64,000 bases of DNA from Malacoraja senta (lineage: Eukaryota). A program made the translations under genes and the position numbers. The notes beneath the pieces were generated by a model. That model was not told the DNA's origin. It was given only the letters and a program-made list of their open reading frames with translations, and did not search any database. Location of the stretch: the NCBI GenBank assembly GCA_038087875.1, contig JAXLNO010005343.1:62001-126000 (forward strand), in the 5' to 3' direction. This document shows, piece by piece, positions 10,846 through 57,055 of this stretch. The stretch's first letter is position 1; each line of letters opens with the position of its first letter.

Positions 10846-11005
10846 ACGAGTAAACGTTATCTCTGATTTAAATTCGGGTATAAAGGTTCCGTTTACATTA
10901 TTATAAATGCACAACGAACGCGCGAATCCGCCTCACAGAAACCATTCACAGTCCGCGCACTCATTTTGTACTAATATAACCGTATCACTAACCTTCATTC
11001 CCTAG

Positions 11006-11311: not shown

Positions 11312-12699
11312 GTAAGACCGGTAAGATCTCTATTACCATAGAAAGATACGTAAAGTTGGAGATTTCACAAAATGTCGCATGATAGGAATTACTGTTATTC
11401 CTGGCCTGAAACTATAAACCTTGAAGATCCGTCTATTATAATCGCATCCGCTCGATTTCCATGTGGCTGCAAATGTTCTCATCAAGTACACGCAAAATTG
11501 TCTTTTGACAAATTCATTGGGAGCTACTACCTCCAGCATGTCAGGCGCTGCACTCCGAATCTCAAGAAAGCTATTCCCACAAATGTCCTCGATACGGTAT
11601 AACCGCTGGTTTCCCCTTTTCTTCAGCGGAAATAGATTGTGTTTAATTGCCCCAGTAAAGCATCTCCCGTGACCAATTGCTCTTCATTTCTGCCAAACGA
11701 GAAGACCCCAAACTTCTCCCAACTCTTCACTGAACCGGGCACAATGATCTCATCTATCATTCTAGCAAACAACCTGTGCATAGACCTAAATTAAAAAGTA
11801 GTGATTTTCAAGCATTTGCCACGGTATGGTGTCCCTTGCTTCATCCATGAGGGCTAAAAGTTCCACGATCTGCCTTAAATCTTTTATCAGCTTCCCAGAA
11901 TTGTGTAATATGTTTTCCTCTTTCCCGTATGCTTCCAAATTCCTCAAAATATAAGCATATCTTGGCTCATTTGTCCAGTCTAACAACGACCTCCTCACGT
12001 CTCCTGTTTTTTTTATGTAGGATAACAGCACTCCCGTAACAAACACAGAAACAATTCCCCGCCACCGCGAGGGTCAATTGTTTGATTCTAAACAAAATGC
12101 CGTGATCCCGATATCCGACTAATATATCTCGGTCTGCCGCTCTGTCTCTACTGCCGGATGAGTCAACGCAGAAGTGTAAGATGGATACATGAGCTAGTAT
12201 CCGCTCCTTGCCGAGAGGCCACGGAGCTGAAACGCTGTCTCTCATTCGCTGAACATGACATAACTTCCTACAGATCAGAAACGTTGCCAATAATTTAAAG
12301 CTAGAAATAAAGTAACACGCTGAAAATATCCTCATTGACATTCCTGAATTTTAAAGCGGATATCATTTGTGAGTCGGACAGACGGTTTGCTGTCTCCGAT
12401 TTAATCAGAAGTATCTCTCATATTGAACTTTCATTTTAATAAGAATACGCGAACACCAGTTCGTTTTTTAAAGCTGTTGTTCTCGTAGTAAAGTATGAAA
12501 ACTATTATTTCTCGCTTATAAGAATAGGTTCATAAAATGACGCCTGAAAGCATGTTTTATTTTTTGACATATAATATAGAACCGTACACCACAGGATCAG
12601 ACATTTCGTCCCGCACGTGATGCAAGTTAAAATAATGTCCTCTCCCTTTTGGTGATCTATTTCCTTACACACTCTGCATCTCAATGTACCTGTACGAAA

Positions 12700-14420: not shown

Positions 14421-15348
14421 ATGTTGGTGGGTGAACATCAGGGACCAGTAACCACAGTTCTATTTGCTTGAAAATAGTTTTGAATCAACACAGGGTTAGT
14501 CCACAAGGTTAAAGTCCGAAGCTGGTGCAAGGTCAACTTTGATGGTATTAGACAGGAATTTACAAACGTTTGGTGGAGGCTTGGAGCAGACCCAACCAGG
14601 GGTCTGAAAAAGAGTCCCGACTCATAACGTCACCCATCCATGTTCTGCAGAGATGCTGATTGACCAGCAGAGTTAATCCAGCACTTTGTATCATTTTAAC
14701 TTACAACTGTTGAGTTGAGTAGGTTATTAGCGGCCAAAGCAGCTTCGGGAAAATTGAATGCTCTTCAAAGTCCAATGGCGAGAGTTCTAAGCATGCATGT
14801 CCATGCTAAAGTAATAGGTAAGACAAATGGGAGTAAGGGAGCCCAGATGACATGCAAATTTGGGTCTCTGGTCAGGAAAAAAGGAGGTATGTGCCAGTTA
14901 TAGGCAGCTGGGATTAAATGTATGCCTTGAAGGTTTTGGGGACTGAGGAGCATAGTTAAGAAGCAAATCAAACGGGCAAAAAAAAGGCAATGGATAATTC
15001 TAGCAAATAATATTAAGGAAAATATGAAGACATTTCGTGAGTACATTAAGGGAAAAAGGTAACTGGACAGTGATATAAAACCTGCTGTAACCTTTGACAA
15101 CCTTTCTCCCAACTCCATCAATTTTATTAAATTTAATTCGACCATTAGGCAAATCTATTTACATTTTCGCCAGATTCGCTTTCGGAAAACTTAAATCTGT
15201 CACTTTTATTTGTTTGCTTTGCACAAATGTTCAAATTATTAGTAGATTTCTGAGCTTGCAGCGTATTACATCAGATTCAAGGGAGAGGGATTTTCCGATT
15301 TCAGGAGGTACGATATTCATATGTATCTTATGCATTTCAATCTTACAG

Positions 15349-15442
15349 GTACTAACATCGTCAATTGTGTCAGGATAATGTGCGGTTTAGTACTACTGCC
15401 TCTTCTCATTGCAACGTGTTGTATTGCAAGAAAAAAATAAAG
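15349..15442 (+). CDS. Gene A candidate TM exon [30 protein letters not shown]
   Basis: Phase-1 acceptor (catttcaatcttacag). Hydrophobic run with Arg at its N-terminal edge and basic stop-transfer RKK. In-frame TAA at 15438-15440, then a donor ag|gtaaag at 15443. Confidence 0.55.
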
Positions 15443-18906: not shown

Positions 18907-19097
18907 TTACTCGCTTTTTTTTTGGTACTGTTGGAGCATCAGAAGTGATAGACACTTTTATTCATGTAATAGGCCGTCGAATCTGTTTTAGAGCATGATT
19001 GTGTCGTTCTCCGCAAGAATCAATTCACCTCTGTTTCGAAGATGCATACTTTCCTCGTTTAGTCTATGGAATGTGCAGGTGAAGCGAGTGTGCCTTA

Positions 19098-19238
19098 TTT
19101 TTAGTTTAGATTAGTTTCGTTTAGTTTCGTTTAGTTTCGTTTAGTTTAGTTTAGTTTAGATTAGTTGCGTTTAGTTTAGTTTAGTTTAGATGCGTTTAGT
19201 TTAGTTTAGTTTAGTTTAGTTTAGTTTAGATTAGTTTA
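19098..19238 (+). repeat. (TTTAG)n pentanucleotide microsatellite with TTTCG/GATTA variants, tail of a minus-strand SINE
   Basis: Directly visible tandem array abutting the SINE sequence gatacaacgcagaaaaaggccc. Confidence 0.9.
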
Positions 19239-19754
19239 GAGATACAACGCAGAAAAAGGCCCTTTGGCCCACCGAGTCCATGCCGACCAACGATGCCCGC
19301 ACACTTACCATATCCTACACAAAGTAGGAACAGTTTTACAATTATACCAAGCCAATTAACCTACAAACCTGTACGTCTTTGGACTGTGGCACCCGGTCTC
19401 GGGCGCTGTGTGGCAGCAACTCTAACGTTGCGCCAACGTGCCGCCCCAAATCTGCGCAAAATCTGAGCAAATCCAGGATAATTCCAATGCCGGTCAATCA
19501 AGAAAGGACAGGTACACATATATGAACGCATTCAGGCTAGATATCGGCACCTCCGCCCTTCGGCATGCTTCGGCGTACAATAAGGTGTTGATTGGCCTTA
19601 GCTCTGCGTTTACCATTGCCAACCTAACGATTGACGGCTTTACTTATTTAATACATATATCATCTCCTGACAGAAAATATAAAGTGGAGAAAAAAGTCAA
19701 ATTCTTGTCCTTGCACATAATGTATCAAAAATATTTATATGGCAAAGTTAGACA

Positions 19755-20104: not shown

Positions 20105-20302
20105 NNNNNNNNNNNNNNNNNNNNNNNNNNNNNNNNNNNNNNNNNNNNNNNNNNNNNNNNNNNNNNNNNNNNNNNNNNNNNNNNNNNNNNNNNNNNNNNN
20201 NNNNNNNNNNNNNNNNNNNNNNNNNNNNNNNNNNNNNNNNNNNNNNNNNNNNNNNNNNNNNNNNNNNNNNNNNNNNNNNNNNNNNNNNNNNNNNNNNNNN
20301 NN
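20105..20302. other. Assembly gap (N run)
   Basis: Run of N characters. Confidence 0.99.
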
Positions 20303-30497: not shown

Positions 30498-30608
30498 ACA
30501 ATTCAATTCCAATGTGATCCAAAGTTAACATATACTACTCTAAACATCACTGGTCTAGAGATATCTACTAAATCCAGATACTTTGAAGAAAGCACGATAT
30601 ATGCCCAG
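30498..30608 (+). CDS. Orphan cytoplasmic ITIM exon TIQFQCDPKLTYTTLNITGLEISTKSRYFEESTIYAQ (probably gene A)
   Basis: Acceptor gataactttcag, open 111-nt phase 0-0 frame, perfect donor CAG|gtaagt. It contains LTYTTL and ends in TIYAQ|. The Tyr-Tyr spacing of 23 aa and the YxQ| junction match gene B exon 39319-39405. Confidence 0.7.
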
Positions 30609-38860: not shown

Positions 38861-38866
38861 TTTATT
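38861..38866 (-). terminator. Candidate polyadenylation signal of gene B
   Basis: AATAAA on the minus strand, ~235 nt downstream of the stop codon at 39101. Confidence 0.4.
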
Positions 38867-39100: not shown

Positions 39101-39223
39101 CTACTTAAAAATCATGATTCCTGCATACACTGTTTCATTATTCTTCGCCGTTCTTGGATCTTTCAGAGACGCGGTGAGATCCAGAGTTGCATAGGTCAGT
39201 TTATTTTGAGACATTTCCTTGAC
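39101..39223 (-). CDS. Gene B last coding exon VKEMSQNKLTYATLDLTASLKDPRTAKNNETVYAGIMIFK* (ITIM plus ITSM)
   Basis: Acceptor tgattatttttcgacag, phase 0, 123 nt ending in TAG. Contains LTYATL and TVYAGI. Confidence 0.9.
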   Translation of the reverse strand, partial: VKEMSQNKLTYATLDLTASLKDPRTAKNNETVYAGIMIFK

Positions 39224-39318
39224 CTGTCGAAAAATAATCAGAGATCATGAGTTGCTGATTCGCCTATATGTGCGATGTACACGAATTTTCCTTGCAGCAC
39301 AATTCCGCTTTATTTTAC

Positions 39319-39405
39319 CTGGCCATAGGTAATTTGTTTTTCCCGCCGTCTGTTTTTCTCAGTTTTCTTCTTTCCGCTGAAGTTCAAATCTGCGTACGTT
39401 GGATA
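39319..39405 (-). CDS. Gene B cytoplasmic exon YPTYADLNFSGKKKTEKNRRREKQITYGQ
   Basis: Acceptor atgttccctcag, donor CAG|gtaaaa, 87 nt, phase 0-0, 95-nt intron to the last exon. The ITIM ITYGQ|V is completed across the junction. Confidence 0.9.
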
Positions 39406-39648
39406 CTGAGGGAACATTTATTTGAAAGGAAATAAACTCCGCATTTACAAACAACTGCGAAGACGATCACACATAAAAGACGCTGGGTCTGCACGACCAA
39501 TCATTCCATTGCTATTTCTGGCCACATCCCTATGATGAGATTACTAAAAAAAGTAAACGGAAGCCACTAGTATCTAATTGGTTTGAGTTTCCTGAATAAT
39601 TAGTGAACTATTAGCTAAAATCGTGAAACCAATGGGCAGAACACTGAC

Positions 39649-39747
39649 CGGAAGTTTGTTGGATGATGACTTCGAGGACAATATATAGTTGACGCGATTT
39701 CTGGGCTCAGACATGTCAGCAGATTTTCCGTCATATATCAGTACGAG
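39649..39747 (-). CDS. Gene B possible optional cytoplasmic exon LVLIYDGKSADMSEPRNRVNYILSSKSSSNKLP
   Basis: Acceptor ttatattttttgcggtgtag, donor CCG|gtcagt, 99 nt, phase 0-0, open. Not needed to keep the frame. Confidence 0.45.
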
Positions 39748-39769
39748 CTACACCGCAAAAAATATAAGG

Positions 39770-40165
39770 TGTGAATTTTGAATTGGAACAGGATGGGCCT
39801 CGGTTATGATGCTTCACGAAGTGAACAATCCGCTCGACACAGACGGATTAGACATAACTGTTTAGGATACCAGCGGCTCTTTTTCCTGAGAAGAGTGGGG
39901 AAGTTTGGCATGATCGCCAGCATCCTCACAAACGTCTACAGTTGCACCATCCAGAGTCTGCTGACGGGCTGCACCACAGTCTGGTACGGGAACTGTTCTG
40001 CCCACAGCCGCAAATCACTACAGAGAGCGATGAAGGCAGCTCAGCACATCACTGGCAACTGTCCGCCGGATATTTTCCGCAGACGATACAGGAGCATGGG
40101 TGCACGTACCACCAGACTTAAGAACCGTTTTTATCATCATGCCATCAGGCTTCTGAACTCATAAA
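39770..40165 (+). mobile_element. Rex1/Babar-like LINE 3' fragment
   Basis: QRLFFLRR...ILTNVYSCTIQSLLTGCTTVWYGNC. Further fragments at ~38250-38520 (-), 52900-53660 (+) and 59720-59830 (+). Confidence 0.8.
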
Positions 40166-40269
40166 CACATCATATATGTTGATTATTTTATTTATTATCT
40201 ACCAATGTCCTACCAATGTCACTTTTATCTTATCTTTTTAATCTTAATTTTATCCTTGTAATATCATGG

Positions 40270-41097
40270 ACACCTGGACATCCGGTGGCGTTGTTACGGG
40301 CTGCCTCCGCCCACGGTCTGGTTGTCTTTTTTTTGTTGTTATGTTTAGAGTGTGTTATTTGGGGGGTTTCTGTATTTTATGTGGGGGGCAGCGGGTAGGG
40401 TAAGAGGGAAACCGTCCGTCAGTCGCTTCCTGGCGAGGATGTGGCTATTATCCGAGTCGCGTCCTCGCCCACCCCCTCTCGCGGCCTACCAACTGGATTG
40501 GCGCGGCCTTTCCTGCCGGGAACGGACCAGAACCTGGGATCGCCGCTTGGAGCTCAGGAGTGTTGGGCCGCTGCTCCAACACCGCGGAGCTGTGGGTGCG
40601 GAGCTCCCAAAGCGGGCGGCGCTGACTTTAACATCGCGGAGTCCTGGGACCCTTTGCCGCGGGTCGCCAGCGCAAATCTCCGCCCAGCGCGGCCTGTGGA
40701 CATCGGGAGCCGCGGACTCCGGTGGAAGGTGGCCGATTCAGAGGTCCAGGCCACTGAGGATGTTCTCCCGTTCGATGTCGGGGTTCCATCATTCCCGGCG
40801 AGAGGGCCTGAAAATTAGGCCGCCCGTAGCGGCGACTACGGGGTGCTCGGGAGCCCCCCGATCATTGGGGAACATCAGTGAGGAGGTTGATTGGACTTTG
40901 GTTCCTTCCCTCACAGTGGGGAACTTTGGTGCCGCTGTGGGGATGTTTGTGTTGTGGACTACTGTGTTCTGTGTTTGTGTGTTGTGTGGGTTTTTTTGTG
41001 TTTTTTTTTTGTATGACTGTAAGGGAAAGAGAATTTCGTTGTCTCTTAATTGAAGACAATGACAATAAATTAAATTAAATCAAATCAAATCAAATCA
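40270..41097 (+). mobile_element. GC-rich non-autonomous retroposon with LINE-like tail and (TCAAA)n end
   Basis: GC/CpG-rich body, GT-rich 3' part, ...aatttcgttgtc...gacaataaa followed by aatcaaatcaaatc. A shorter relative occurs at ~27780-27990. Confidence 0.5.
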
Positions 41098-41393
41098 TTG
41101 CTGAGGTGACCCGTTGTCTTGTCAAACACATTTCATTGTACTGTTGACCCTGTGTTAACCTACATATGACAAATAAAACTGAACTGATCGATACGCAAGT
41201 GCACGTCACTGACGATCATGGGCTATATCATAAGAATACAGAAGGATAAGGAAAATTGCAAACGAGGCACGTAGAGAGTTCCACGAAAAGTGGATCCATC
41301 CTGTTGTCCCATCAATGTGATTATAATTACGGACGTCCATTAGCAGAACATGATACAATAGGTTATATCTTGTTATACCATCAAAAAAATTAC

Positions 41394-41437
41394 CTGTTTT
41401 TCGAAGTGATGAGTTCTGTCCTCAATATTTTCTGGGG
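41394..41437 (-). CDS. Gene B first cytoplasmic exon (A)PENIEDRTHHFEKQ
   Basis: Acceptor ttttattatgttctctactag, donor CAG|gtaatt, 44 nt. It is the phase 1->0 bridge required between the TM and ITIM exons. Confidence 0.75.
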
Positions 41438-42109
41438 CTAGTAGAGAACATAATAAAACGACCAAATTTAATCATCAACGTATCACAACCTGCCTGCCGA
41501 TAGTCAGTTAATAATCGAGTTGTGACCAGATTCGTTCGGCTGCAGAAATTGACCATTGCGATCATGCTATTCTTGTTATTTGAACAAATCCTCTCCTCGT
41601 AAGTCATAATGCTAAGGAAAAGCACACGGAAAAGTTGAAACCCTATGGTTTGCTTCCGCTTTCCTGTGATAACTGCCCCTATTTAAACAACCCGACCTTT
41701 GCAGCATTTCACCCAGTGTTTAAAAGAGCCTTCTTTTTAGAACAAACGACAACTATGCTTTTGCAACCAACGGCTTAAACCGGTTAACATTTTGTTTCCC
41801 ACAGAATGCTGCGGTCGGGGAAATGCCATGTTGTTTAAATCTATCGTTATCTCAGCACTCCTCGTTGCTCCTTCAACTGAACATTGCCATTTTCGGTAAA
41901 AACACGAAGGGCTGTAGTAATTCAGCGGGTTAGGAAGCATCTACGGGGGGCATCGATGCCGAAGTTTCAAATGTGACTCAACCCCAAAAGTTCCCTATCC
42001 ATTGTATCCCCAGATGCTGCCAAACCGCTGAGTTACTCAAGCACTTTGCGTTTTGCATCTGCAGTTCCTTGTGTCGCTAATTTCGGACAAGAATCAACTA
42101 ATTTCTTAC

Positions 42110-42220
42110 CTTCAGTACTGTGTAATTTGCACCGCCTGGCAAAAAATAGCAGCGCTAGAATAATTAACACGCATGTGGCAAATCCACCCGTCAGAAAGTA
42201 GACAAGTTTAACGCGTGTTC
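42110..42220 (-). CDS. Gene B transmembrane exon GTRVKLVYFLTGGFATCVLIILALLFFARRCKLHSTE
   Basis: Acceptor cttttattttccctttag, donor G|gtaaga, 111 nt, phase 1-1. Uncharged 22-aa hydrophobic core followed by RRCK. Confidence 0.88.
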
Positions 42221-42319
42221 CTAAAGGGAAAATAAAAGCTAAATATTATAATTTTTCAGAGATTATCTTCATTGAATAATCAGATTACATGAACCAGTGA
42301 ATTGCAGAATGTGTCCACA

Positions 42320-42850
42320 TTTTCACTTTGCTACGCTGTATTCCATTACCCACTCTCCCAAACTGTCCAAGTACTTCAGCAAACTCCCTGCTTCCTCAAC
42401 ACTATCTGCCCCTGAACCTACCTTCGTGTCATCTGAAAACCTGGCGAAAATGCCATCAATTTCATCATCCAGATAATTAACATATAATGTAAAATGCAGC
42501 AGACACAACACCGACCCCCTGCAGAACACCACTAGTCAACCACAACAAACCACAAAAGGCCCCTTTATTGACACTGTTGTCTTCTGCCAGTTAGTGAATC
42601 TTCAATCCGTTCTAATCTAATGCCATGCGCTTCTATTTTGTTTAACGGCCTCACGTGGCACCTTATCAAAGGCATATTTAAATTCCAAGTAAACGACTCT
42701 TATTGACACTCTCTCGTTTATCCCGCTTGTTATCTCCTCAAAAAAACAGAAAGGGTTTGACAGGCAAGATCTCCCTTTAACAAAATTATGCTTATATTAT
42801 CATGTGCATCCAAGTACTCGAAACGTCATCCTTAATACGGATTCTAAAAT
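42320..42850 (-). mobile_element. Degraded CR1 RT fragment
   Basis: GSVLC...FTLYVNYLD...ARFSDDTKVG. Confidence 0.75.
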
Positions 42851-45349
42851 TTAAAATTTTCGATCAGTAGCCTTTAAAGAGGGCTGAACTTTGTTTTACT
42901 CTTCATATATTCTGTCTGATAATTATCTCAAACATTTTCCGTTGTTTCTCCTTCATACTTTATATCTACATACTATTTTGACATTGTACGGATGCGCTTG
43001 TCACCACCTCTTCCCGTTTCGCCGTGTCACTTGAATTCCCCGGCAATCAAAATATAAGCTTTAAGGTAACGAATTACCTGGAGTGAAAACATCAAAAATT
43101 TATTCCACTGGGCATAAAAAACACGATTTCTCGTGCACGATCTGTAATGTACTTTGTATTTGGTAAAATAGATTATTCTACTGGGTTTCGGGTCTGTGTC
43201 TTCTTAGTGTTGGGATCATTAATATCGTAAAGGCTGTTTAATTGACATATCGACCGTCTGTTGAAATTTTGGAAGGATAACTGCAGTCGATAGGATTCAT
43301 GTATCAACACGAGATCAGAATTATTCTGAGTTGTGATATATCTCTGAGAAGGTTTGGCGAACAAATCATTGACGCACCACCGAAGTGTTGCACGTGCACT
43401 ATCCCAGCTTTCAAAATGGTTTGAACAATATAGACGTTAGTCACGTTATACCATCCCGAGAAAGTGACACTCTGGATCCACTCCTGGCACATCTTCGCAG
43501 TTAGTAACTCTGCTGTTTCACATCTCCAGAGACCCTGGATCAATTCTGACCTCCAGTGTTCTCTGGAGTTTTTATATTCCCACGGTGACCACGTTACTTC
43601 CGTCGGGTACTCTAACATCTTCCCAAATCTCACCGACTTGCAGGATTGTTGGTTAATTGGCCATTATACGTAGTTATTAAGTTTGAAGAAGAGTCTCGAC
43701 CCGAAACGTCACCCATTTCTTCTCTCCAATGACGCTGCCTATCCAGTTGAGCTACTGCAGTATTTTGTGCCTATCTCCGTCAGTAATGTGATGGTCATTT
43801 TGTGGGGAGTTGATAGGACTGTGCCGGGAATGAAATGGGGCGACAGTAGGTTTTGTACAATTAGGGACTAGCTGATCCCAAGCACCTGTTTTCTTCCTTT
43901 AACTACATAAAACATTTACACCCGAGCCGTTGGTTTTGGGCCTGGAGAAAAGTATAGTCTCCGTCGCTGCGATTGAGCTCATTATTCATCATAGCGGGGA
44001 AGTGGAAATTTTACATTTAACGTTTGTACCTTATGAAAACCGAAACGACGAAGAGACAACCAAGATTAAACGATTGGATTTATAAAGCAAAAAACAAAAT
44101 ATACAATGGGGTGTACCTGTCCAGAGTATTTCATAATGGTGACTAAAGTTAAGGCAGGAACACAGCTAATGGGATCATTATTTATCAAGAAAGAACTAAC
44201 ATGTAAAAGCAAGGAGGTTGTACCATTTATTTTGGATAGAAAGTACGTCCAGTGCAAGATTGGGCAAATAAGTTAAGGGCAATCTTTGCAATGCTCTCTC
44301 TACATTAGCTTTCCATTTCAATCTCATTTTTTCCACATCCATCTTGGGGGAGGGGGATGCTGCTATTAATTCCCATTACCAGCCCGCGTACACGCACAGT
44401 TATCTCCAGCGCATTTCCTCTGACTCAGCCAGGTCAACGGGCTCCATTACCTATATGTATTTTCTGAGACATTGTTTGACATTTTCTGATAATCGTACGT
44501 TCTGTAATCGCAAATTTCACTGGACCTTAATTGGTACATGTGACAGTAAACTGACCTTGAAACCTTGAAACGTTGTATCGCTGTTTCTATAAGCACCCTT
44601 TACCTCAACGTGTTTGCCTCCATCACAGTTTGGTTCACAGCCATGCATGCTCAATTTATCAGTCAGCTGCTCTGAAATCTCGTCCCAACACCCACCTGGA
44701 ACAAGAAGAGCTTTCTCCTTGTCCATAAGGTCAATGTCATAAGGAATAGGAGTAGAATTAAGCCATTCGGTCCATCAAGTATACTCTTCAATGCAATCAT
44801 GGCTGAACTATCTCTTCCCCCTAACCCCACTCTTCAGCCTTCTCCCCATAACCTCTGACACCTCTACTAATGAAGAATCTATCTCTCTCTGCCTATAAAA
44901 TATCCACTGAATGCCTCCACAGCCTTCTGTAGCAAATTATTCCATAGATTCGCCGATAATCTGCAAGTAATCTTAAGTAATTTTAAATGCTGCAGAAATA
45001 ATAATGAGTTCGAAAAAAATCCCATTATTTCAATTCGAAACCTGAAACTCTCAGACCAATAAAACAATGAGTGCAAGTCAGAGGCAGCGAAAACTTCAGA
45101 AGGAGGATTTAACAGGCCTGGGGTTCATTGAGAAGGGCAATCACCACCTTGGACTCAACAGCGACACATCTAGCAGAGCTGCTGTTTCACAGCACCAGAG
45201 ATACAGGTGCAATTCTAAATTGGGCCCTGTCTATGTGAAGTTTGCATTCTCTCTGAAATCATGTGGGGTTTCTCCTGGTGCTCCAGGTTTCTCTCAACCC
45301 CCAAAGACGTGTGGATTTGTGCAGCAGCAATCCACTCCAGGATAGGTAT

Positions 45350-45760
45350 AAAGGGATAGGAGTAGAATTAGGCGATTCGACACATCAATTCTACTTCGCC
45401 ATTCAATCGTGGCTATCTATCTCTCCCTCCTAACCCCACTCTCATGCCTTCACCCCATAAGCTCTGACACTTGTACTAATGAAGAATCTATCTATCTCTG
45501 CCTTAAAAATATCCACTGACTGCCTCCACTGCTTTCTTTTAATAATTTAATTCTGAGGCTATGACCTCTAGTCCTAGACTCTCCCGCAAGTGGAAACATA
45601 CTCTCCACATGCACTCTATCCAAACCTTTCACTATTCTGTATGTTTCAATGAGGTCCCCCATTCTTCTGAACTCCAGCGAATACAGGCCAAGTGCCGACA
45701 AACGCTCAACATAGGTTGATCTACTCATTCCTGGGATCATTCTTGTAAACATCTTCTGTA
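45350..45760 (-). mobile_element. CR1 3' fragment; a similar 3' end occurs at 44740-44940
   Basis: RMIPGMS...LYSLEFRRMGDLIETYRI...TRGHSLRI. Confidence 0.8.
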
Positions 45761-45919
45761 CGACTACCCTCTAATCTCATGGAATCATGCTCTATATTTT
45801 AAACGACCATCGGAGTCATGGCACCAGCTGGCAGCTGATCTCCCTCTACTTTCTTTATCGCAAAAGCATTATTTCACCACAAACCATCTTCACTTTCCTG
45901 TATCCGCGAACACCTATTT

Positions 45920-46071
45920 GCCTTCTCACCATACCTTCGCATTCAGCGATATTGTAATGTTTGCCCTTTCAAAACTTCCATTAACACCACCCAGGGTGCC
46001 TTCTCATCATACCTTCGCATTCAGCGATAGATATTATAATGTTTGCCCTTTCAGAACTTCCATTAACACCA
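45920..46071 (+). repeat. Tandem direct duplication of ~72 bp
   Basis: gccttctca(c/t)cataccttcgcattcagcgat...tgtttgccctttca(a/g)aacttccattaacacca occurs at 45920-45990 and 45998-46071. Confidence 0.9.
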
Positions 46072-47888
46072 TCTGCTTACTCCCTCCAGGGTTAACCTTT
46101 TCCGATTTCAATTACGACAGTATATTTGGTGAGGTCTATTTCACTTGGGAAATACCAGCTGTAGAGCTACTGCCTGAACAGCGCGAGAGACGCAGGTTTG
46201 ATCCTAACCATGGATGCTGTCCGTGTGGAATGTCTACGTTCAAATGTGACCGCGTTGGTGTTCTTCGGGTATTACGGTTTCCTCCCACATCCCTTGATTG
46301 TGGAGGTGTGAAAGCTAATTGGCTTCTGTAATTTGTCGCCAGTGTGTAGTGAGTGAATGATAAAGTGTTCTAACAGAGAAATATATGCAGGTGATCGATG
46401 ATCAGCGTGGACTTGGTGGGCTACCTCAATGAAGTCTCAAAAAAAGCGTTATGGAATATCTTCCAACTACATGGACTAAAACTTTAGACCTGAAAAATAT
46501 ATTCAACAATTTCAGAAATTTGGAAGTATACTGGCAGTTTCTATGAATGAAAATAATGGGATAACTTCCAGCTGCTGGGCGCATAAAATTAACAAAACAT
46601 AGAGATGTCTGGGAGCACGGAACAGATCAGACAGTTCAGACGAACGCCTACCAGCCGGAATTATCGCTACTCCTTATTGTATGTATGACCGTTCGAACAT
46701 TTTCTTATTTCTCCTTTCTTTTCATTTTCCTCTTCTGTTTGAATCTCATCACAGATCAGTAACCATGAAAAAAGAAAACATCGAAGTTAATGACCGCGTC
46801 TGTTATTAAATCTCCCTTGGCCTCTCTCTTCAGGCTTGTTGTTTTGGTCCCTTGAAACTTGAAATATGTTGGATTACCATCTCTCTCCAATCTCCAAGGT
46901 TACAGTGATAAGACTGAAAATTATTTTACATATACACAGAAAACAGTGCCCTTATTATGCAGGGAAACAGCTTTACAAGTATCTGCTGAGACGACTTATA
47001 GACAATAGACAATAGACAATAGGTGCAGGAGTAGGCCATTTGGCCCTTCGAGCCAGCACCGCCATTCAATGTGATCATGGCTGATCATCCTCAATCAGTT
47101 CCCCGTTCCTGCCTTCTCCCCATATCCCCTGACTCCGCTATTTTTAAGAGCCCTATCTCGCTCTCTCTTGAAAGCTTGTTGGTGTTCTGTGTGCTGTTCT
47201 GGTCATCCTGCTATACGTAGCATGCCATTAAGTTAGAAAAGGTGCAGAAATGATTCACCAAGTAGTGCCTGGAATTCATGGCTGGAGTTATACGGTGATG
47301 CTGAGTAGGTTGTGACTTCTGCCCATGAGGCATAGGCGGTTTACCCAATTAAAGTATATAAAATTATGATGGTCGTAGAGAAAGTGAATGCTTACAGTTG
47401 TTTTCCCCAGCGTAATGGATTTTGAACATGGAAAATTAAGAGGGGCCCAAGGGGCAATTTCTTTCCGAGGAAGCTGCAGAAGCGTATACAATTGTGATTT
47501 TCAAAGGATATTTGGATAGATATTTGGATAGGGGAAATGTGTCAAATGCGGGCAGATGAGTCTAGTCCAGAATGCCAACTTGCTTGACGTCGACAGGGCG
47601 GGTCGAAGGGTCTTGCCTCCATGCTGTGTAGCTCTATATAATCAGAGATAAACAGCGAGTTCAAGCATTCGCTATTAAAAAACCATACAAACACAACTGT
47701 CATCTTTGCACGATGTCTCTTACTAACCAGTATCTAATTTCCTAGACTTGTCATACCTTTTCATTTCAACAAAGACAAGCTCACTATCTTCATTTAAACA
47801 CTTAAAACGGTCTGGCGTGTGTTTTGGGTGGTAATTCATGAAATGCCATGACATGAAACAGACATTATTGAAAGTATTATCCTCATAC

Positions 47889-48170
47889 CCATTCCAAGAA
47901 TTCTGTGAGTTTCAACGGTCGGAACCAGGAGGGTGACGTGAGACACATTGCAACTATAAACCGATCGGCTATCCACTACTTGCAGGAAGCTGGAAGCAAG
48001 GTATAATCCCTCGTCGTTCCGTATTTTAGTGGTACTTATTCCAGAAGTGATTTCGTGGTCATCTTTATACCAGGTAAGTTCACAGTCCTTCGGGAAAAAC
48101 GGAGCAGTTGTACAGTTTAGTGCCAGGGAAGGAGTGTTCATCTGTTTAATCTTCAAAGGCGTCGGTGACA
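47889..48170 (-). CDS. Gene B C1-set Ig domain exon
   Basis: (V)SPTPLKI...LNCTTAPFFPKDCELTWYKD...EGLYLASSFL...YSCNVSH. Acceptor aattgtttgcag, donor G|gtatga, 282 nt, phase 1-1. Confidence 0.92.
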
Positions 48171-48299
48171 CTGCAAACAATTTAAGATAAAGGAGTTAGC
48201 ACCCCTATATCTTTATTTAGAAGACCATATAATCGCTTTCGAAATGGATAATACCATAACTTCTTGAGCGTTCCTTTAATAGTAAAATATTTAACTCTG

Positions 48300-50082
48300 T
48301 TGTTGGGAAACTAACCGAAAGGGCGGGACGCCTAAAAGCCAACTAACCGAAAGGCTGCGTCGCCAACAAGTCAATTAACCGAATGGCCGCCCAACCGAAA
48401 AGTCAAATAACCGACATGACGTCACAGGGTGCGGGACTTGTCAGCGATTGGTCCAGATCCCTGCGTACATCACGTCTGACTACACTTATGCAGAGCAGCT
48501 ATGGAAGTTGAGAAAACTGGCACTGACCGCGGTCTATGTGAAGGGACAGCACCTACCAACAATGAAGGCACCATAAAACCAGCTGCCACAAGCCCTTCCC
48601 ACGGAACGGGGTTTTAACTCGGCATGAAAAGTCAAAAAAGAGTTACATTAATTTAATAACAAAAATGTTACATGTATAAATGGTTCTTACATTTGGGAAA
48701 CTGGTTAATTAAGTGGTGGGTTTATTTCCCTGTCCTAACTATGCCTTCGCTTTAGCAGGTGGTCACATCCATTCCATCCCTCTCTTGCAAATGTATAGAT
48801 GCAGGCGCATGAAAAGCCGATGAAATGAGATGAGAAATGAGAAATACATGAAGCCGATGAAATGAGACAACTGTCACACCAAAGATACACAAAATGCTGG
48901 AGTGTCTCAGTGGGACAGGCAGCATCTCTGGAGAGAAGGAATGGGTGGCGTTTCGGGTCGAGACCTTCAGACACAGTCTTCAGGTCTGAAAAATGGTTTC
49001 GACCCGAAACGTCACGCATTCCTTCTCTCCAGAGATGCTGGCTGTTCCGCTGAGTTACTCCAGCTTTTTTGTCCATCTTCGGTTAAGGCAGTTTACAGAT
49101 TACCTGGTGTTTTTGTGCGTGTGAGCTTGTGTGCGTTACGCAGGCAACCAGACGGTAATACATAAAACATGCTTCTTGTTGTCAGGAGGGGGGAGAGGCA
49201 GGAGATAACATTGTTCGTTGTCATGCACACTTGTCATCGGCCCGCCAGGGAATTTATGTGTGTCCCCCATGTTTAAAAAGCGATTTACTATGGCTGCCAA
49301 TGCCCCGAGGCGAGTGACCCCGCGGCCGGGGTGGGGATGAATCACCCGGTGTGGGTGTCAGGTTGTAAATCACCCCGTGAGTGGGTCGGGGTCCGGGGGT
49401 CGGGGGGGAAATCACCCTGGTGTGGGGGTTGGGGTCTGATGGCGGTGCATCGTGGTCAATGACTCTGAGAGGGACCAGCCTGTCCCACACCTCTGCTCCA
49501 CCCAGCGCTGCCGACACACAACCGTCACAGTGCGGCCGCACGGTAGAGACGAGGCGGAGGGCGGCCGTGGTCATGGGAGAGTGGGGGTTGTCCGAAGGGA
49601 TGCGCTCCTTCGGCCCCTTACAACTTGGTGCTCGGATTCAAAGTCCCCAGTCACCTATGGCTTGTGTGGGAAAATGACCCCCACCCTCCCGTCTCCACCG
49701 GCCAGTGATGTGATGGACGCGAGGGTCTGGACCAATCGCTGACGTGTCCGGCCCCCCGGCGATGTCATGTCCGTTATTTGACTTTTCGGTTGAGCGCCAT
49801 TCGGTTAGTTGGCTTGTAGGCGACGCAGCCTTTCGGTTAGGTGGCGTTTCGGCAGAGCGGCCATTCAGTGAGTTTGCTTTTAGGCGACGCAGCCTTTCAG
49901 TTAGTTGGCTTTTAGGCGTCCCGCCCTTTGGTTAGTTTGCATTTAGGCGCCCCACCCTTTCGGTTAGTTGGCGTTTCGGCTTTGTACGCTTTCGGTTATT
50001 TGGCGTTTCGGCTTAGTTTCCCTTCAGTTATTTGGCTTCCACTTCTTGGTTCGGCTTCTCGTCCTTCGACGCCACCGGGTAC
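48300..50082. mobile_element. Foldback/MITE-like non-autonomous DNA element with repetitive long inverted termini
   Basis: 48311-48435 (aactaaccgaaagg... arrays) is the reverse complement of ~49760-49940. The right arm carries extra tttcggtt units to ~50080. No transposase ORF. Confidence 0.7.
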
Positions 50083-50434
50083 CATGACATAAACTATCGA
50101 ACTTGTAATAAGGATCAATTAAAAGCAAATCACACCCGATATCTCAAGTAAACCAAATAATTTAATGTGCCGCAATCAGATAGTAGGCCTTACAATAATT
50201 CTGTTCCCGATGCAAACGAATATGATTATTAAGTTATACTATATCAGACACTTCCAGTTATTTCAAATTTAACCATGACATTGCAAAGCTTACGTTTAAA
50301 GAATCAACAAGAAGATCGACTGAAAGAATGCAGAAGAAATTATTTTTATGGGAAAGAAGAAGATTCATGGGGATGAGGATACGGAAAGATGGTATGTTTC
50401 ATCAACTGTGGTCATGGCGAATAGGATACATGGG

Positions 50435-51075
50435 AATCTCATGTAGATAGGGTGGTAAAGAAAGCTTTTGGTGTGCTGGCCTTTATAAATCAGAGCATTG
50501 AATATAGAAGTTGGGATGTAATGTTAAAATTGTACAAGGCATTGGTGAGGCCAATTCTGGAGTATGGAGTACAATTTTGGTCGCCTAATTATAGGAAGGA
50601 TGTCAACAAAATAGAGAGAGTACAGAGGAGATTTACTAGAATGTTGCCTGGGTTTCAGCAACTAAGTTACAGAGAAAGGTTGAACAAGTTAGGTCTTTAT
50701 TCTTTGGAGCGCAGAAGGTTAAGAGGGGACTTGATAGAGGTCTTTAAAATTATGAGCGGGTTAGACAGAGTGGACGTGGATAAGCTTTTCCCATTGAGAG
50801 TAGGGAAGATTCAAACAAGGGGACATGACTTGAGAATTAAGGGACAGAAGTTTAGGGGGAACATTAGGGGGAACTTCTTTACTCAGAGAGTGGTAGCTGT
50901 GTGGAATGAGCTTCCAGTGGAAGTGGTGGAGGCAGGTTCGATGTTATCCTTTAAAAATAGATTGGATGGGTATATGGACGGGAAAGGAATGGAGGGTTAT
51001 GGTCTGAGTGCAGGTAGATGGGACTAGGGGGAAGAATTTTATTTTTAATTTAAAAAAAAAAAAAAAAAAAAAATT
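50435..51075 (+). mobile_element. CR1 3' portion with intact 191-aa C-terminal frame
   Basis: ORF 50452-51027 LVRPILEYGVQFWSP...RGDLIEVFKI...TRGHDLRI. More degraded CR1 follows at ~51340-51960. Confidence 0.92.
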
Positions 51076-54000
51076 AAATGTTCGGCACGGACTTGAAGGG
51101 CCGAGATGGCCTGTTTCCGTGCTGTTATGGTTATATGGTTATATGGTTATATGGTGGCGGGCATGCGGGGGGCAGTTAATTTAGAATGTGGTGATGTGAG
51201 TTAACACATCGGTTGTGTCTTATAATGGAATACATCTAGGGACGTCGAGAATTGATTAAAACAAAACATCAAATTAAGAGTGTGTATCAATAGAGAAATA
51301 GCGTGAAAAGACCTACATGAAGACTTGAGGATGGCTAATATTGTGGCTATATTTGAGAAGGGCTGGAAGGAAAACTCTGGGACCTGTAAACTAGTCTGTG
51401 TTAGGAAGGCCACTGGAAAGGATTCAGAGGGATAAAATATGTATGCATTTGATTAGAAAGGAGCTGATCGAGGATTATCAGCAAGGTGAAATATCGTGTG
51501 TCACGAATCCGATTTATTTTAAAGCAACCAAAAAGGTTGATTTGGGCAAAGCAGTAAGACGTTGTCTGTATGGACCAGAAATGACTTTGACAAGGTTCCA
51601 CATGGTACGTTGTTCTGGAACATTAGAACCCATGTGGTCCAAGGAGAACTCGCCACTGGGTAGAGAAATGGCTTCATGTAAGGAAGCAAAGCGTGATGGT
51701 GGAATGTTGTATTTTGCGGACTCAATTCCGGGGAAGGGGAGAGGGGAACACTTACCAAGAAGCTAAGGGGCATCCTCTTCATGCAGATGCTGGTGGGTAT
51801 ATGGAATGAGGTGCCAGATGAGGTCGCTGAGGGAGGTACAATTTTTACCAGACATTTGGACGGATAAATTGGGAAAAAGGTTTAGAGAAGGATAAGGGCC
51901 AATTACTGTGTGACATCTTGGTGAGCATTGGACAATTGGGCTGAACTGGGTGTTTTCCTGCTCGAGGACTCTGTGCTTCTATTCAATGATAGCGTTTATT
52001 TTTGCAAAGCGTGTCAACCCAATGCCAAATATATTCAGGAAAATATATCAAATTATGACCAATAATCAATAGATCAAGAATAGATCAAGGGTAATAGACA
52101 ATAATACGTAGAGTTCTGAGCTAGGAATAAGTTCGTATAGAAATTGGTTGATTAAGCAAATCATAATCTTTCAGATCGATTAGAGGAGGGTTATCTACCC
52201 AAGTGGACTAATGATGGACAATTGATAAATTAATACATTACATCTCACATAAGCTTTTTTAAAAAGGTGAGGATAATTATAGCTATCACGCCAACCAACG
52301 TGATTGCTTCCCTCCAATGAAGTAATAACGGGGTGAAGTCAACGCGCCCTCATATTATCAGAACGTACAAACTCCGTACAGACAAGCACCTGTAGCTAGG
52401 ATCGAACGCGGGCCTCTGGCGCTGTAAGCGCTGTTGGCTGCACCTCTACCACTGCACCACCGTGCAGAGGCTCAAATATTGGATTGTTATTAGGTGGTAC
52501 AGATATAATATAATAGCATGAAAATACTACTCCATATGTAGCCATTAATGACTCAACGGGTGAAGCAGAGAAATGGCTTCCCACGGAACCTGTGGAAAAT
52601 GACACCCAAAGGAAACTGTAATTTGTTCCCACAAACTGAACATGCAAGGAGGATGCAGACAAATGAAACATTAGAATCACTTCTTAAACGCAGCAAGCAT
52701 GGGATGAAAGAGGGCGAGCAGGACAGATTTTGGGGGAAGTAGCATGCGCGATGTAATGGTTGTGATCCAATTGGTTTTTGACATCAGTTTCCTACACCTA
52801 TAAGGGAAAATAACACAGAGGAAAGAAGAAATCACTGGAGATAATCCATAATGTTCTAACAGCAGGTATACAAAAGGCCATATTGGAACTGACCAATGCC
52901 GTGAAGCTGTCACATTGCTCACGCTTCATCCTCGATAACTATCAGAACAGTGGCACCTCAAGGCTGTGTGCTCACTCTATACCCATGGATGTGTACCCGG
53001 AACAGTTCCAACTCAACCTTTACATTTGCAGACTACACCACCGTTGCTGAACTAATTACAGGTAATGATGTGTCAGAGGAGTTCCATCATCTGATCGAAT
53101 GGTGCTAGAACAACAATCTGTCTCTCAATGTCAGTAAAATTGCTGATTGTTGACTTTAGAGGAGGACGGGCCAGGATTCATCAACCTATCTTCATCGACG
53201 GGTCGGTGGTGGAGAGAGTCAAAAACTTCAGGTTCCATGGCATGCATATTTCTGAAGATCCGTCCTGAAGTCCGCACATCCATACAATCATATGAAAGCC
53301 CCCCAATGCTTCTAATTCCCAAGAAGATTGAGGAGGTTCGGTATGTTGCCATTGAGTCATAGTCATAGTTTCCTGCTTGACACCATCTTTAATCGAAAGC
53401 GCTCTTAAACCTGTGCAGTATATGGTAGAGCGTATTAACCGGTTGCATCACGGCCTGGTCCAGTAACTCGAACGCCCAGGAATGGAATTACAAAAAGTGG
53501 TGGACACTGCCCGATCGATCAGGTGTTCCGACCTTCCAACCATCGAAGAGATCTATAGGAGAAGCTGCCTCAAAAAAGCAGCCAGCATCAAGACCTCACA
53601 CAACCTTGCCACACTGCCATCGAGAAGAAAGTATAGGCGTTTGAAAACCATGACCTTCATGTTGTGAAAGAGCTTTTTCCCAACAACCCTTCAGGCTATT
53701 AGACATTACAAACACCAACTAAACCGAATACAAACCGTCTTTGATGTACTCGGAACTTTGGAGCATTTGTTTTTGTTTTGCACTAATATAGTTTTCTATT
53801 GTAAATATTTTGGTTTGTTTGTTGAGTACTGTGCTACAGACCCGTTATGCTGCTGCGACATTGTTCTGTTTCTGTACATTGGCAATGAATCACCCTTAAC
53901 TGTTTGGGATAGATTCCAACACTCACATGTCTGCAGCAAAAATATGTAACTCACGTGAATCATAATAGACGAAAATGTTGAAGCAAACATTCAATCACTC

Positions 54001-56506
54001 ACCTAGAGGGATACTCGGGTCCATTTGAACCTTAACACCTTCAACTCTCTCTATTTCTCGACCTCGCTATTTGTTTCTTCCAGTGCGTGGATATCCTCAC
54101 TCAACCACATCATTTTGCACCTGTCATATATTTACTTAATCGCTAACCCTGACCATAACCTTCTTAATTCGCCCTGTATCAAGCACGCCCTCTGTACTGT
54201 GGTGATTGTGTTGCTTTTTAGTGTTTTAGTTTTAGAGATACAACGCGGAACCAGGCCTTTCGGCCCATCGAGTCCGCGCCGGCCAGCGATTGCCGCATAT
54301 TAACACTATCCGACACACACTAGGGATACTTTTTACATTTACCAAGCCAATTTACAACCATACCTCTACGTCTTTGGGGTGTGGAAGGAAACAGAAGATC
54401 TCGGAGGGAACCCACGCGTTCACGGGTAGAACGTACAAATTCCGTAGTCAGGATCGAACGGGGGTCTCCGACGCTGCAAGCGCTGTAAACTCTATCGCTG
54501 CGCCACCATGCCGAGTTTTCATAGGTGTTGTGTGTGTGTGTGTGGGGGGGGGGGTGACTTAATAGAATGAAATGTTTAGCAACTACATTTACTCAACATG
54601 AAATAGGACACCATCTCTAACGGCGAATGTTCGGCACCATCATGCTCCCGTCCACGTAACAAAAGCATTCTTTCTACATCGGTGGGTAAATCTTTGATCT
54701 CCATCCCAAACTGATCTATGCAAGTGCTCTCACCAGAGAATTTCCGCGGATATTTCACAAGTAGTGATCGGAAAGAAAGAAAGGGTGCATGGGACTGACA
54801 ATTTCGGTTTCCTGGTGGCGGGCACATAATTGATCTCTCCACTGCGACGCAAACTTCTTTTCCTCGGTTATTGTAATTTAATGTGGTGAAATGTTTAGTT
54901 TACAAGGTCTTGATTCCACTACTCTGGGTAAAAGGCGATGCATATACCAGATTTATTCCTGTCATGATCAGATACGCCTTAATAAGATCAACTCTTACCC
55001 TCCTGCGCTGCAAGGAATAACGTCCTAGCCTGCTTAGGCTCTCCCTATAGCTCAGACCCTCGCGTCGTGGCAACATCCTCGTAAATCTGTTCTATACCCC
55101 TTCCAGCTTAACTACATCATGCCTAGTTGCAGAGGCAGATACGATAGGGGCATCTTAGATATTTTTAAATAGGCAAATGCAGGGAATGGAAGGATGTGTC
55201 TCGCAAAGAGCGGATATTATTTTAACTTGGCACCATATTCGGCACTGAAATTGTGGGCCGAAGGGTCTATTCCTGTTGTATGTTGAGGAGATGTTGAATT
55301 TATTTTGAGCAGTTATAAGTTTCGAAATTGATGGGATGCTTTAGGTATTTGTCGTGTTCGCAATACACGTCACGGTGCTTAAACTGGACAAGGTATAGTA
55401 GCGTTTATGTGTGTATTCAGTAGTTGCTGATGTGGGATTGAAATAGTGCGCTGTGCGGAGGAAAGAGCGTACTCAGTTGGCTGAAGCTTTTTGGCATATT
55501 GCCACCCATCAATCGAGTATGCCGCTGACGTGTATTTATCATTCAGACTGAAGCTTCTGTTCTCCCACTCGAAGCTCTGCTGAGTTCCAATGAAACTCGA
55601 CGTAAAATGACGGATAACGTTTTGATTAATACTCTCAATTTGCAATTTAATCATTTGAATTCTGATACTAATTTTATCTTCTTTGTTTACATATTTTGTG
55701 ACTTGTTGCATTATTCTCAGATTTCCCCCCGTTTATAACTTAATGGGGTTGTTTTGTCTTCCACCCACATTAATGCGCCACCACGCACCCCACCTATTCT
55801 TCCTTGCTATACCTCTGAATTTCTTTAACAATTTTCACCATGAACTTTTGTTACTTCCGTTATAACGTTCTAGGCAGAAACTAATTTCTGTAGTCGCAGA
55901 TGTGTTGTGACTCGTATTTTATCATTCATTTTCTTTGAAACTATGAATTCCTAAAATCACGGTAGAATAGTCTTACACAAGATTGCGGTTAGAATATATC
56001 ACGCTCACTATTCATCAAATGTTTCTTCTATCAACATACGTTTTGTTAACATTTACTATTTGGATTAGAAATAACTACATAAATGGTCAAGTATGGTTAT
56101 TCTACAACAAAGAGCTCAATTCGTGAACCCCCAAGAATGCTCCATCATCTGGATATCACAGGTCTAGACTCGAACGCAATGTTTTTTTGACTAAACGACT
56201 GCAGCTACAATACTCGCTAACATATGACGGTTTATATTTCATTGACTACCATCTGCAATCTTAATCTATACTCCTTTCGCAGGATGCAGTTGAGGGGCCG
56301 CCAAGAAAATTAACCCTACACATAAAAATGATAACTAAATGATATGAAATTAAAGAATAATGATTGTCCAAAGAGCTCGTGGTCCAACAATCACGAAAAA
56401 CCAATTACTTAAATCGCTAGTGCAAAACTTCTAGTACAGACTTTATAACTCTGTAGCACACCATATTTGTTTTGTATTGTGATTCGAAACATCAAGTAAG
56501 ACTCAC

Positions 56507-56830
56507 CGTGCACAATAATCCTCGTGCCATTGCTTTTGGAACTCTTTCCTTCCCCGCGTCTCACACTGCAATAATAGATCCCGGAGTCACGGAAGCTCAC
56601 GTCCAACAGATGTAATTCGGCAAATCCCTTCAGTACATTGTTCATTGTCATCCTCCTGTTTGCGGTAGGATTCAAAGTCTCTTCTTGACCGTCTCTCTTC
56701 CAGTATACATCCACCAGTGCTTTCTGACCGAAGATTGGGAAAGTACAGTATAGGGATACATTTTCACCTTTCACTTTCGTTACCTTATCGGGAATCTGAC
56801 GCACCCTGAACGAGGAGGCCCCGTCAGTAA
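56507..56830 (-). CDS. Gene B germline-joined V(J)-type Ig domain exon
   Basis: FRVRQIP...GENVSLYC...VYWKR...AELHLLDVSFRDSGIYYC...SNGTRIIVH. Acceptor tttttaattctgacag, donor G|gtgagt, 324 nt, phase 1-1. Confidence 0.93.
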
Positions 56831-57000
56831 CTGTCAGAATTAAAAACAAACGTTAAACATGTGAAATGACAATGAACGGATTGATAAAAATCCAAATAGC
56901 TGAAATAGCTCGACCGAAAGGTAAGAGTTGTACATCTTATACTTTTCGCGGATTGACCTTTTCCCTGTTATTTTCGTTTAATAGAGGGAAATATATTAAC

Positions 57001-57055
57001 CTGTGTAACTCATGCGCAGGATCGAGAGAAACAGCAGCACGGCAAACATAAACAT
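57001..57055 (-). CDS. Gene B exon 1: signal peptide MFMFAVLLFLSILRMSYT(V)
   Basis: 55-nt coding leader, phase-1 donor G|gttaat, 170-nt intron to the V exon. Same leader length as gene A. Confidence 0.82.

Follow-up and report, generated by a model that had tools for sequence, protein, structure and literature searches.

The stretch of DNA analyzed here (64,000 nucleotides [nt]; referred to as the window) comes from the skate Malacoraja senta (assembly GCA_038087875.1, contig JAXLNO010005343.1, positions 62,001 to 126,000) and contains two genes, A and B, plus repeats. Our analysis centers on gene B, which is located on the minus strand and very probably represents an intact seven-exon gene for a SIRP-like inhibitory receptor, a member of a family of proteins from cartilaginous fish (chondrichthyans). 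The work was exclusively bioinformatic, and all coordinates refer to the whole window. An initial annotation had proposed eight exons for gene B and described them as compatible in phase. This was borne out by a reading of the sequence: there is an AG before and a GT after each of these exons, the last of which closes with TAG, and their start phases are, in order, 0,1,1,1,1,0,0,0. The joined exons encode 341 amino acids (aa) without the 99-nt exon at positions 39747-39649 and 374 aa with it. The gene spans 17.95 kb, compared with 18.9 and 19.3 kb for the genes of two relatives, and the single run of N in the window (20105-20302) is outside it.

Exon 1 (57001-57055) provides the start codon together with the greater part of the signal peptide (MFMFAVLLFLSILRMSYT), i.e., a hydrophobic leader in which 8 of 18 residues are identical to those of the leader of a Mobula relative (P0004); it has a GT donor and ends in phase 1. 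Exon 2 (56507-56830) encodes a V-set domain (Pfam, 2e-11) with a germline-joined J-like strand, SNGTRIIVH. The single C1-set domain (Pfam, 5e-13) is encoded by exon 3 (47889-48170), the borders of which coincide with the limits of a 93-94-aa block that isoforms P0005, P0009, and P0155 lack. Exon 4 (42110-42220), recognized on the basis of hydropathy, tblastn, and an isoform border, encodes a stalk, an uncharged transmembrane helix, and an RRCK stop-transfer sequence; it is 50% identical over 38 aa to a query consisting of the P0004 tail (tblastn), and its borders are those of a 38-aa block skipped in isoform P0160. The 44-nt cytoplasmic exon 5 (41394-41437; APENIEDRTHHFEKQ) has AG/GT borders, is aligned with TEAAENDENLSRYLENQ and SEGTEISEDIPGQFEEQ of relatives, and has a 3' border that corresponds to an isoform break after ...ENQ or ...EEQ. 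This exon restores phase 0, and the tail reads out of frame if it is omitted.

The tyrosine motifs are distributed over two exons, which were recognized by a motif scan and by alignment to the relatives. Exon 7 (39319-39405) carries the first pair (PTYADLNF and ITYGQV). Its equivalents in the relatives end in ...VYAQ or ...TNAL at the same column as in gene B and are 36-37 aa long, whereas exon 7 of gene B has 29 aa and lacks 8 residues at the 5' end. An extended form of exon 7 can be dismissed: in-frame stops are located just upstream, and no in-frame AG other than the acceptor used here occurs within 100 nt. Exon 8 (39101-39223), which was also matched by the P0004 tail query (tblastn), carries the second pair (LTYATLD and TVYAGI) and the TAG stop codon (39103-39101). 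A pattern scan detected an AATAAA sequence at positions 38861-38866, 234 nt past the stop codon, which may serve as the poly-A signal. A mechanical list of the open reading frames (ORFs) in the window includes only the V and C1 exons of gene B, which agrees with the initial remark that none of the transmembrane or tail exons appear on the ORF track. Gene B thus shows that reading long ORFs alone can miss a complete receptor gene.

The eighth proposed exon (39649-39747; 33 aa), which had been offered as optional, has AG/GT borders and phase 0/0, and its inclusion would yield the 374-aa form. No equivalent of this exon was found in any of the relatives aligned, and no further copy was detected within the window. 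Its best score against 160 proteins was 39, compared with a mean of 41 for shuffled controls. The exon is probably not part of gene B, judging from these comparisons. Of the two product lengths originally proposed, the 341-aa form therefore stands, and the 374-aa form is unsupported, the additional exon scoring no better than shuffled sequences.

The gene B product is a type I membrane receptor in which a signal peptide is followed by a non-rearranging V(J) domain, a single C1-set domain, a transmembrane segment without charged residues, and a 94-residue tail. The strongest hydrophobic segment is LVYFLTGGFATCVLIILALLFFA, which has a hydropathy peak of 2.49 and zero charged residues. All four tyrosine motifs were located in the tail in the order PTYADL, ITYGQV, LTYATL, and TVYAGI. 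Both the uncharged membrane segment and the motif order had been called correctly from the DNA letters in the initial annotation, as had the V-C1 ectodomain, for which the two Pfam matches cited above provide support. ITYGQV and LTYATL fit the consensus of the immunoreceptor tyrosine-based inhibitory motif (ITIM), and TVYAGI fits that of the immunoreceptor tyrosine-based switch motif (ITSM). Gene B thereby has the features that define the class of ITIM receptors, i.e., at least one (I/V/L/S)xYxx(L/V/I) sequence in the tail of a type I protein with an uncharged transmembrane segment. No further immunoglobulin (Ig) exon was found in the introns of gene B, either by protein tblastn searches against the window or by a scan of all intronic open frames. 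A second C1 exon was accordingly rejected, there being neither an Ig-like intronic frame nor a tblastn match, and the ectodomain encoded in this assembly comprises V and C1 and no other domain. An alternative transmembrane exon containing Arg was also considered for the gene B locus and was rejected, as none is present there.

An exhaustive HMMER search of 1.84 billion proteins with the V exon as the query identified relatives at E = 5e-31. The V-exon matches are proteins of 260-450 aa with V-domain identities of 46-56%, and the relatives share a common layout, consisting of a leader, V, C1, a transmembrane segment, a short acidic stretch, and a tail in which the tyrosine motifs recur in the order seen in gene B. 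The exons of gene B resemble those of its own clade to different degrees, with identities of 48-56% for both the V and the C1 exons, up to 51% for the transmembrane exon, approximately 40% for exon 5, 38-45% for exon 7, and 40-52% for exon 8. Counterparts of every constitutive exon are present in RefSeq models of Mobula, Hemitrygon, Heterodontus, Heptranchias, Scyliorhinus, Mustelus, and Callorhinchus. The isoform blocks of these models break at five gene B junctions (V/C1, C1/transmembrane, transmembrane/exon 5, exon 5/exon 7, and exon 7/exon 8), the intron positions of the relatives being deduced from isoform differences only. Gene B has the exon layout that characterizes the family, i.e., leader, V, C1, transmembrane, short cytoplasmic, and two tyrosine-pair exons. 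These correspondences establish its gene structure, domain types, and membership in the family.

The members of this family include proteins from rays and skates (Mobula birostris, M. hypostoma, Hemitrygon akajei, Hypanus sabinus, and Amblyraja radiata), sharks (Heterodontus, Heptranchias, Scyliorhinus, Chiloscyllium, Cetorhinus, and Mustelus), and a chimaera (Callorhinchus). All of them are automatic gene models, and their database names conflict: they are variously called tyrosine-protein phosphatase non-receptor type substrate 1-like (i.e., SIRP-alpha-like), tapasin-related protein-like, CD276 homolog, immunoglobulin lambda-1 light chain-like, NCR3LG1-like, or uncharacterized. The names assigned by pipelines to the chondrichthyan V-C1 family are thus unreliable. 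All matches with a gene-B-like C1 domain were chondrichthyan among those traced to their source (approximately two-thirds of them), and the matches traced to other vertebrates were multi-Ig proteins lacking such a domain. No non-chondrichthyan V-C1 protein was found among the best 150 representatives matching the V exon, and word-indexed homology searches returned cartilaginous-fish proteins only, whether the query was a single protein or a profile of 13 sequences. We found no description of the family in the literature on SIRPs in sharks, elasmobranchs, or cartilaginous fish, and gene B is apparently unannotated.

A maximum likelihood (ML) tree of 39 ectodomains placed gene B inside an elasmobranch clade (support, 100/100) and, within it, in a batoid subclade (100/99) whose branching order, (gene B, (Hemitrygon, Mobula)), agrees with that of the species. 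On this phylogenetic evidence, gene B is best described as the skate branch of the batoid subclade in a multigene family of rays, sharks, and chimaeras. It keeps 22 of the 23 invariant residues of the family in the V, C1, and tail regions (the exception being G117S) and all 15 near-invariant residues. The spacing of the tail tyrosines is 23/13/22 in gene B, 23/14/23 in Callorhinchus, and 23/13-14/22-23 in the family, for which the consensus motifs are sYAxLNF, T[VE]YAQ[IT], LTYAxLD, and TEYAxI. That spacing and motifs are conserved throughout the cartilaginous fish speaks for a functional tail. Another Mobula protein (P0156) has an ectodomain near-identical to that of the long-tailed P0004 together with a six-residue tail and an Arg in the transmembrane segment, and the family thus appears, from these predicted proteins, to have the pattern of paired inhibitory and activating receptors. 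In Scyliorhinus canicula P0018 (450 aa), the transmembrane-plus-tail block occurs twice after one V-C1 unit, which is probably an annotation fusion of two tandem genes.

The conserved tail suggests a mode of action for gene B by analogy with known inhibitory receptors. Binding of a ligand by the V domain would cluster the receptor beside activating receptors, and Src-family kinases would then phosphorylate the four tail tyrosines. The two ITIM + ITSM-like pairs, in each of which the tyrosines are approximately 23 residues apart, could bind SHP-1 or SHP-2 via the tandem SH2 domains of these phosphatases, which, once docked, would dephosphorylate nearby signaling proteins and thus damp activating signals. 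The phosphorylation, the SHP recruitment, the ligand, and the expression of gene B are all inferred. Recruitment of SHP-1/2 via a membrane-distal ITIM followed by an ITSM-like motif is characteristic of receptors of the Siglec/CD33, CEACAM1, and LILR types. ITIM + ITSM-like modules were also present on multi-Ig proteins among our matches (P0021, P0023, P0028, P0047, P0054, and P0065). In contrast to gene B, the Siglec/CD33, CEACAM1, and LILR receptors have V-, I-, or C2-set ectodomains without C1, and most of them carry one motif pair rather than two. The C1 alignment scores of the multi-Ig receptor matches were 48-65, compared with 150-280 within the chondrichthyan family.

SIRP-alpha is among the known proteins closest to gene B. 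Both have a V domain with a J-like strand followed by a C1-set domain, an uncharged transmembrane segment, and a tail composed of two ITIM + ITSM-like pairs in the same order. The tyrosine spacing of human SIRP-alpha, approximately 24/17/26, is comparable with the 23/13/22 of gene B. Like the SIRPs, gene B has an N-terminal V-set domain, and its tail shows the four-tyrosine order of the SIRP-alpha tail, whose ITIM-type sites dock SHP-1/2 (YADL / EYAxI / YADLD / EYAxV), with a first motif that is not a canonical ITIM. The charged-transmembrane, short-tailed partners in the chondrichthyan family are, in turn, reminiscent of SIRP-beta. The differences are that gene B has one C1 domain, that its V domain is not specifically SIRP-like by sequence, that its first motif has a Pro at position -2, and that its family is known only from cartilaginous fish. 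SIRPs have the layout V-C1-C1, with two membrane-proximal C1-set domains (PMC2785349), whereas gene B has one C1 exon, which is of the C1-set type. They have been reported in mammals, chicken, and Anolis and dated to Tetrapoda (PMC9652883, PMC13262535). The initial description of a SIRP-alpha-like inhibitory architecture on a V-C1 ectodomain is upheld by the four tyrosines and their spacing, which are conserved from skate to chimaera, and by profile and structure matches to SIRPs. By analogy, it is well supported that gene B would work like SIRP-alpha; orthology to SIRPs and sensing of CD47 are unproven.

The ectodomain was compared with other proteins at the levels of profile, structure, and language-model features. 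With a 33-sequence ectodomain profile, SIRP-alpha was collinear over V-C1 (profile positions 3-193 to residues 4-205; 118.9 bits; rank 5), and SIRP-alpha and SIRP-gamma were the only proteins in the top 60 other than Ig chains or UrIg2. When domains were scored separately, SIRP-alpha obtained 54.8 bits for J+d2 and 41.9 bits for d3, compared with 57-58 bits for Ig light chains, 50.6 bits for UrIg2, and 22-40 bits for Ig heavy-chain constant domains. The structural comparison used a predicted model of the closest annotated orthologue (predicted local distance difference test score, 91.9). Among Swiss-Prot models, its best matches were SIRP-beta1 and SIRP-alpha (TM-scores, 0.74-0.76), followed by TAPBPL, butyrophilins, and CD276 (0.62-0.70) and by Ig and T-cell receptor chains (approximately 0.43); weighing against the SIRP link, PD-L1 tied with the SIRPs at 0.74. 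A PDB-wide structural alignment was nondiscriminating, with Z scores of 14-17 for many V-C pairs (Rst, B7-H6, PD-L2, and butyrophilins). In a search with language-model features, SIRP-alpha clusters ranked first (0.96) and accounted for 16 of the 100 nearest entries; a search with the tail only returned no usable match. No SIRP was found among the best 60 solved matches of the V exon. SIRP-alpha, -beta, and -gamma are therefore the nearest non-immunoglobulin relatives by profile, structure, and language-model features, but they are tied with Ig light chains, UrIg2, or PD-L1.

Two views of the origin of gene B were considered. In the first, the ectodomain would derive from an old group of non-rearranging VJ-C1 proteins (UrIg and PRARP), and the SIRP-alpha-like tail would be convergent or exon-shuffled from the pool of ITIM/ITSM tails, so that gene B would encode an inhibitory receptor but no SIRP. 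This view is less likely than not. Among solved structures, the C1 exon matched shark UrIg2 best; the family profile obtained its highest per-domain scores with VJ-C units of Ig lambda and kappa; and the family has a germline-joined J-like strand. The occurrence of similar two-motif tails on unrelated multi-Ig receptors also points in this direction, as do the non-rearranging VJ-C1 genes known from the shark major histocompatibility complex (PMC10751288, PMC12227049). UrIg and UrIg2 resemble gene B in having a non-rearranging VJ exon followed by a C1-set exon and in being restricted to cartilaginous fish. However, they have three to nine C domains (in UrIg2, nine C-type domains accompany a VJ; UrIg is antibody-like), and neither has an ITIM tail (PMC12227049). 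Gene B, with a single C1 followed by a transmembrane segment and an ITIM tail, falls outside the UrIg layout of VJ plus at least three C-type domains. The per-domain score of UrIg2, moreover, is no higher than that of SIRP-alpha or the Ig light chains, and SIRPs score as high as UrIg2. Ig light chains (lambda and kappa) share the V-J-C1 layout and obtained the top per-domain scores; they differ from gene B in being rearranging, in being secreted or paired with heavy chains, and in lacking a transmembrane segment and tail, and their bent V-C elbow accounts for the low TM-score (approximately 0.43) to the orthologue model. PRARP, as far as it is described in a paper citing the original report (Fu et al. 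2019, cited in PMC10751288), comprises non-rearranging VJ-C1 membrane proteins of chicken and other nonmammals. By that description, it would resemble gene B in combining a non-rearranging VJ, a C1, and a transmembrane segment.

In the second view, the chondrichthyan family would be orthologous or co-orthologous to the tetrapod SIRPs, gene B would be a SIRP-alpha-type self sensor binding skate CD47, and the V-C1-C1 layout would have arisen by duplication of the C1 exon. We regard this, too, as less likely than not. In its favor, the motifs occur in the SIRP-alpha order, and the consensus of the family closely resembles ITYADL, TEYASI, and LTYADL, the motifs published for SIRP-alpha (PMC5413580). 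The profile search points the same way, with SIRP-alpha and SIRP-gamma alone beside Ig chains and UrIg2, with SIRP-alpha collinear, and with its d3 scoring above Ig heavy-chain constant domains, as do the leading positions of SIRP-beta1 and SIRP-alpha in structure and of SIRP-alpha clusters in language-model features. The Arg-containing partners in the family recall the charged transmembrane residue of SIRP-beta, and the NCBI pipeline names members SIRP-alpha-like in at least eight species. Orthology is further opposed by the V exon, for which the searches described above returned neither a SIRP among the solved matches nor a V-C1 protein from outside chondrichthyans, by the per-domain tie with Ig light chains and UrIg2, by the TM-score tie with PD-L1, by the single C1 domain, by the presence of the same ITIM + ITSM-like module on unrelated receptors, and by the automatic naming of other family members as tapasin-related, CD276, Ig-lambda, or NCR3LG1-like.

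How SIRPs arose in evolution is, according to reviews, unknown (PMC9652883), and their family was dated to Tetrapoda by a 2026 survey (PMC13262535). According to the SIRP-alpha structure paper, SIRPs are near the V-C1 precursor of antigen receptors, and none were known outside higher vertebrates (PMC2785349). We tentatively raise the possibility, which we consider less than probable, that the chondrichthyan V-C1 family represents a pre-tetrapod SIRP lineage, i.e., an ancestral one-C1 form with a four-tyrosine tail and charged-transmembrane partners at the base of the jawed vertebrates. If so, the origin of SIRPs would shift from Tetrapoda to the gnathostome root, and these proteins would be living examples of the "V-C1 receptor on myeloid cells" of Hatherley et al., a relative of the antigen-receptor precursor. 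A V(J)-C1 family with a SIRP-alpha-type tail and Arg-containing transmembrane partners in all cartilaginous fish makes the question of SIRP origin directly testable.

The reading of gene B as an intact inhibitory receptor gene was also weighed against DNA and RNA data. In three other skate DNA data sets, the V exon differs by substitutions alone and is free of stops and indels, and all indels listed in these sets are intronic or upstream. The best-covered copy of the V exon has 6 synonymous changes over 70.7 sites, 8 nonsynonymous changes over 250.3 sites, and no stops; the resulting ratio of nonsynonymous to synonymous changes per site (pN/pS), approximately 0.38, is suggestive of constraint, but it is built on 14 changes only and has low power. 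This low power is one of several points that weigh against the reading. In the protein itself, PTYADL has a Pro at position -2 and is thus a YxxL site rather than a canonical ITIM, the J-like G-x-G motif has a Ser in place of its first Gly (G117S), and the C1 domain has an extra unpaired Cys (C156). In addition, no close orthologue of gene B is annotated in Amblyraja, although that of gene A is. Run searches found no RNA run of Malacoraja senta, and in a poly-A RNA run of a related species (tissue unknown; approximately 6% of the run read), zero reads matched the gene B exons. As RNA gave no verdict, the gene model rests on comparison. A further reading, in which gene B would be a relic without expression or would have been silenced recently as its family underwent birth and death, with a frame that has yet to decay, is quite improbable: the missing exon reads, the missing Amblyraja annotation, the location among dense retroelement debris, and the derived residues where relatives keep the consensus (F69 for Ser and S for G117) are in line with it, but none of the seven exons is interrupted, their splice sites are intact, gene B retains 37 of the 38 conserved positions of the family, the V exon is free of indels and stops in three data sets with the pN/pS given above, and the RNA run, of which only the small portion given above was read, was of another species and an unknown tissue.

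The poly-A RNA reads matched only intronic repeats of gene B (39840-41200 and 41824-42070). Within the former, a GC-rich repeat at positions 40212-41100 was covered to a depth of up to approximately 500 at 90-95% identity, mostly by minus-strand first mates; it is a transcribed repeat family that does not belong to the product of gene B. In the middle of the V exon (56567-56720), one contig of the best-covering skate DNA set has 6 differences in 154 nt, and the flanking contigs of the same set have 0-1 differences per 115-180 nt. Three of the V-exon changes (N57Y, R59S, and T61K) cluster at residues 57-61. This cluster of differences reflects either allelic hypervariability or a close paralogue.

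Gene A (8990-15437, plus strand) is a paralogue of gene B, with 28% identity in V and 39% in C1. It consists of a V exon (approximately 8996-9334), a C1 exon (approximately 11005-11310), and a transmembrane exon (15348-15437), which contains Arg and with which the gene ends here (...ARKK, followed by a stop). In the ML tree, gene A groups at a very short distance with Amblyraja radiata P0130, a close orthologue, for which the RefSeq model is unlike gene A in having two near-identical C1 copies, an uncharged transmembrane segment, and a tail with tyrosine motifs. The short distance suggests that the window derives from a skate near Amblyraja. Two stretches on the plus strand before the N gap (19063-19098 and 19445-19510) gave weak tblastn matches to the P0130 tail (SMECAGEASVPY and PKSAQNLSKSRIIPMPVNQERT; E = 3e-4) and may represent decayed or alternative tail exons of gene A. 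The Arg-containing transmembrane segment of gene A (15360-15413, plus strand) resembles the Mobula hypostoma P0156 segment NLCRILLGLLVI, and this likeness suggests that an "activating" type of transmembrane exon is conserved in the family. An orphan exon at positions 30498-30608, which is on the gene A strand and 15 kb beyond the transmembrane exon of that gene, encodes CDPKLTYTTLNITGLEISTKSRYFEESTIYAQ, followed by GTAAGT, and has the form of a family exon 7, with two tyrosine motifs and an end at ...YAQ directly before the gt.

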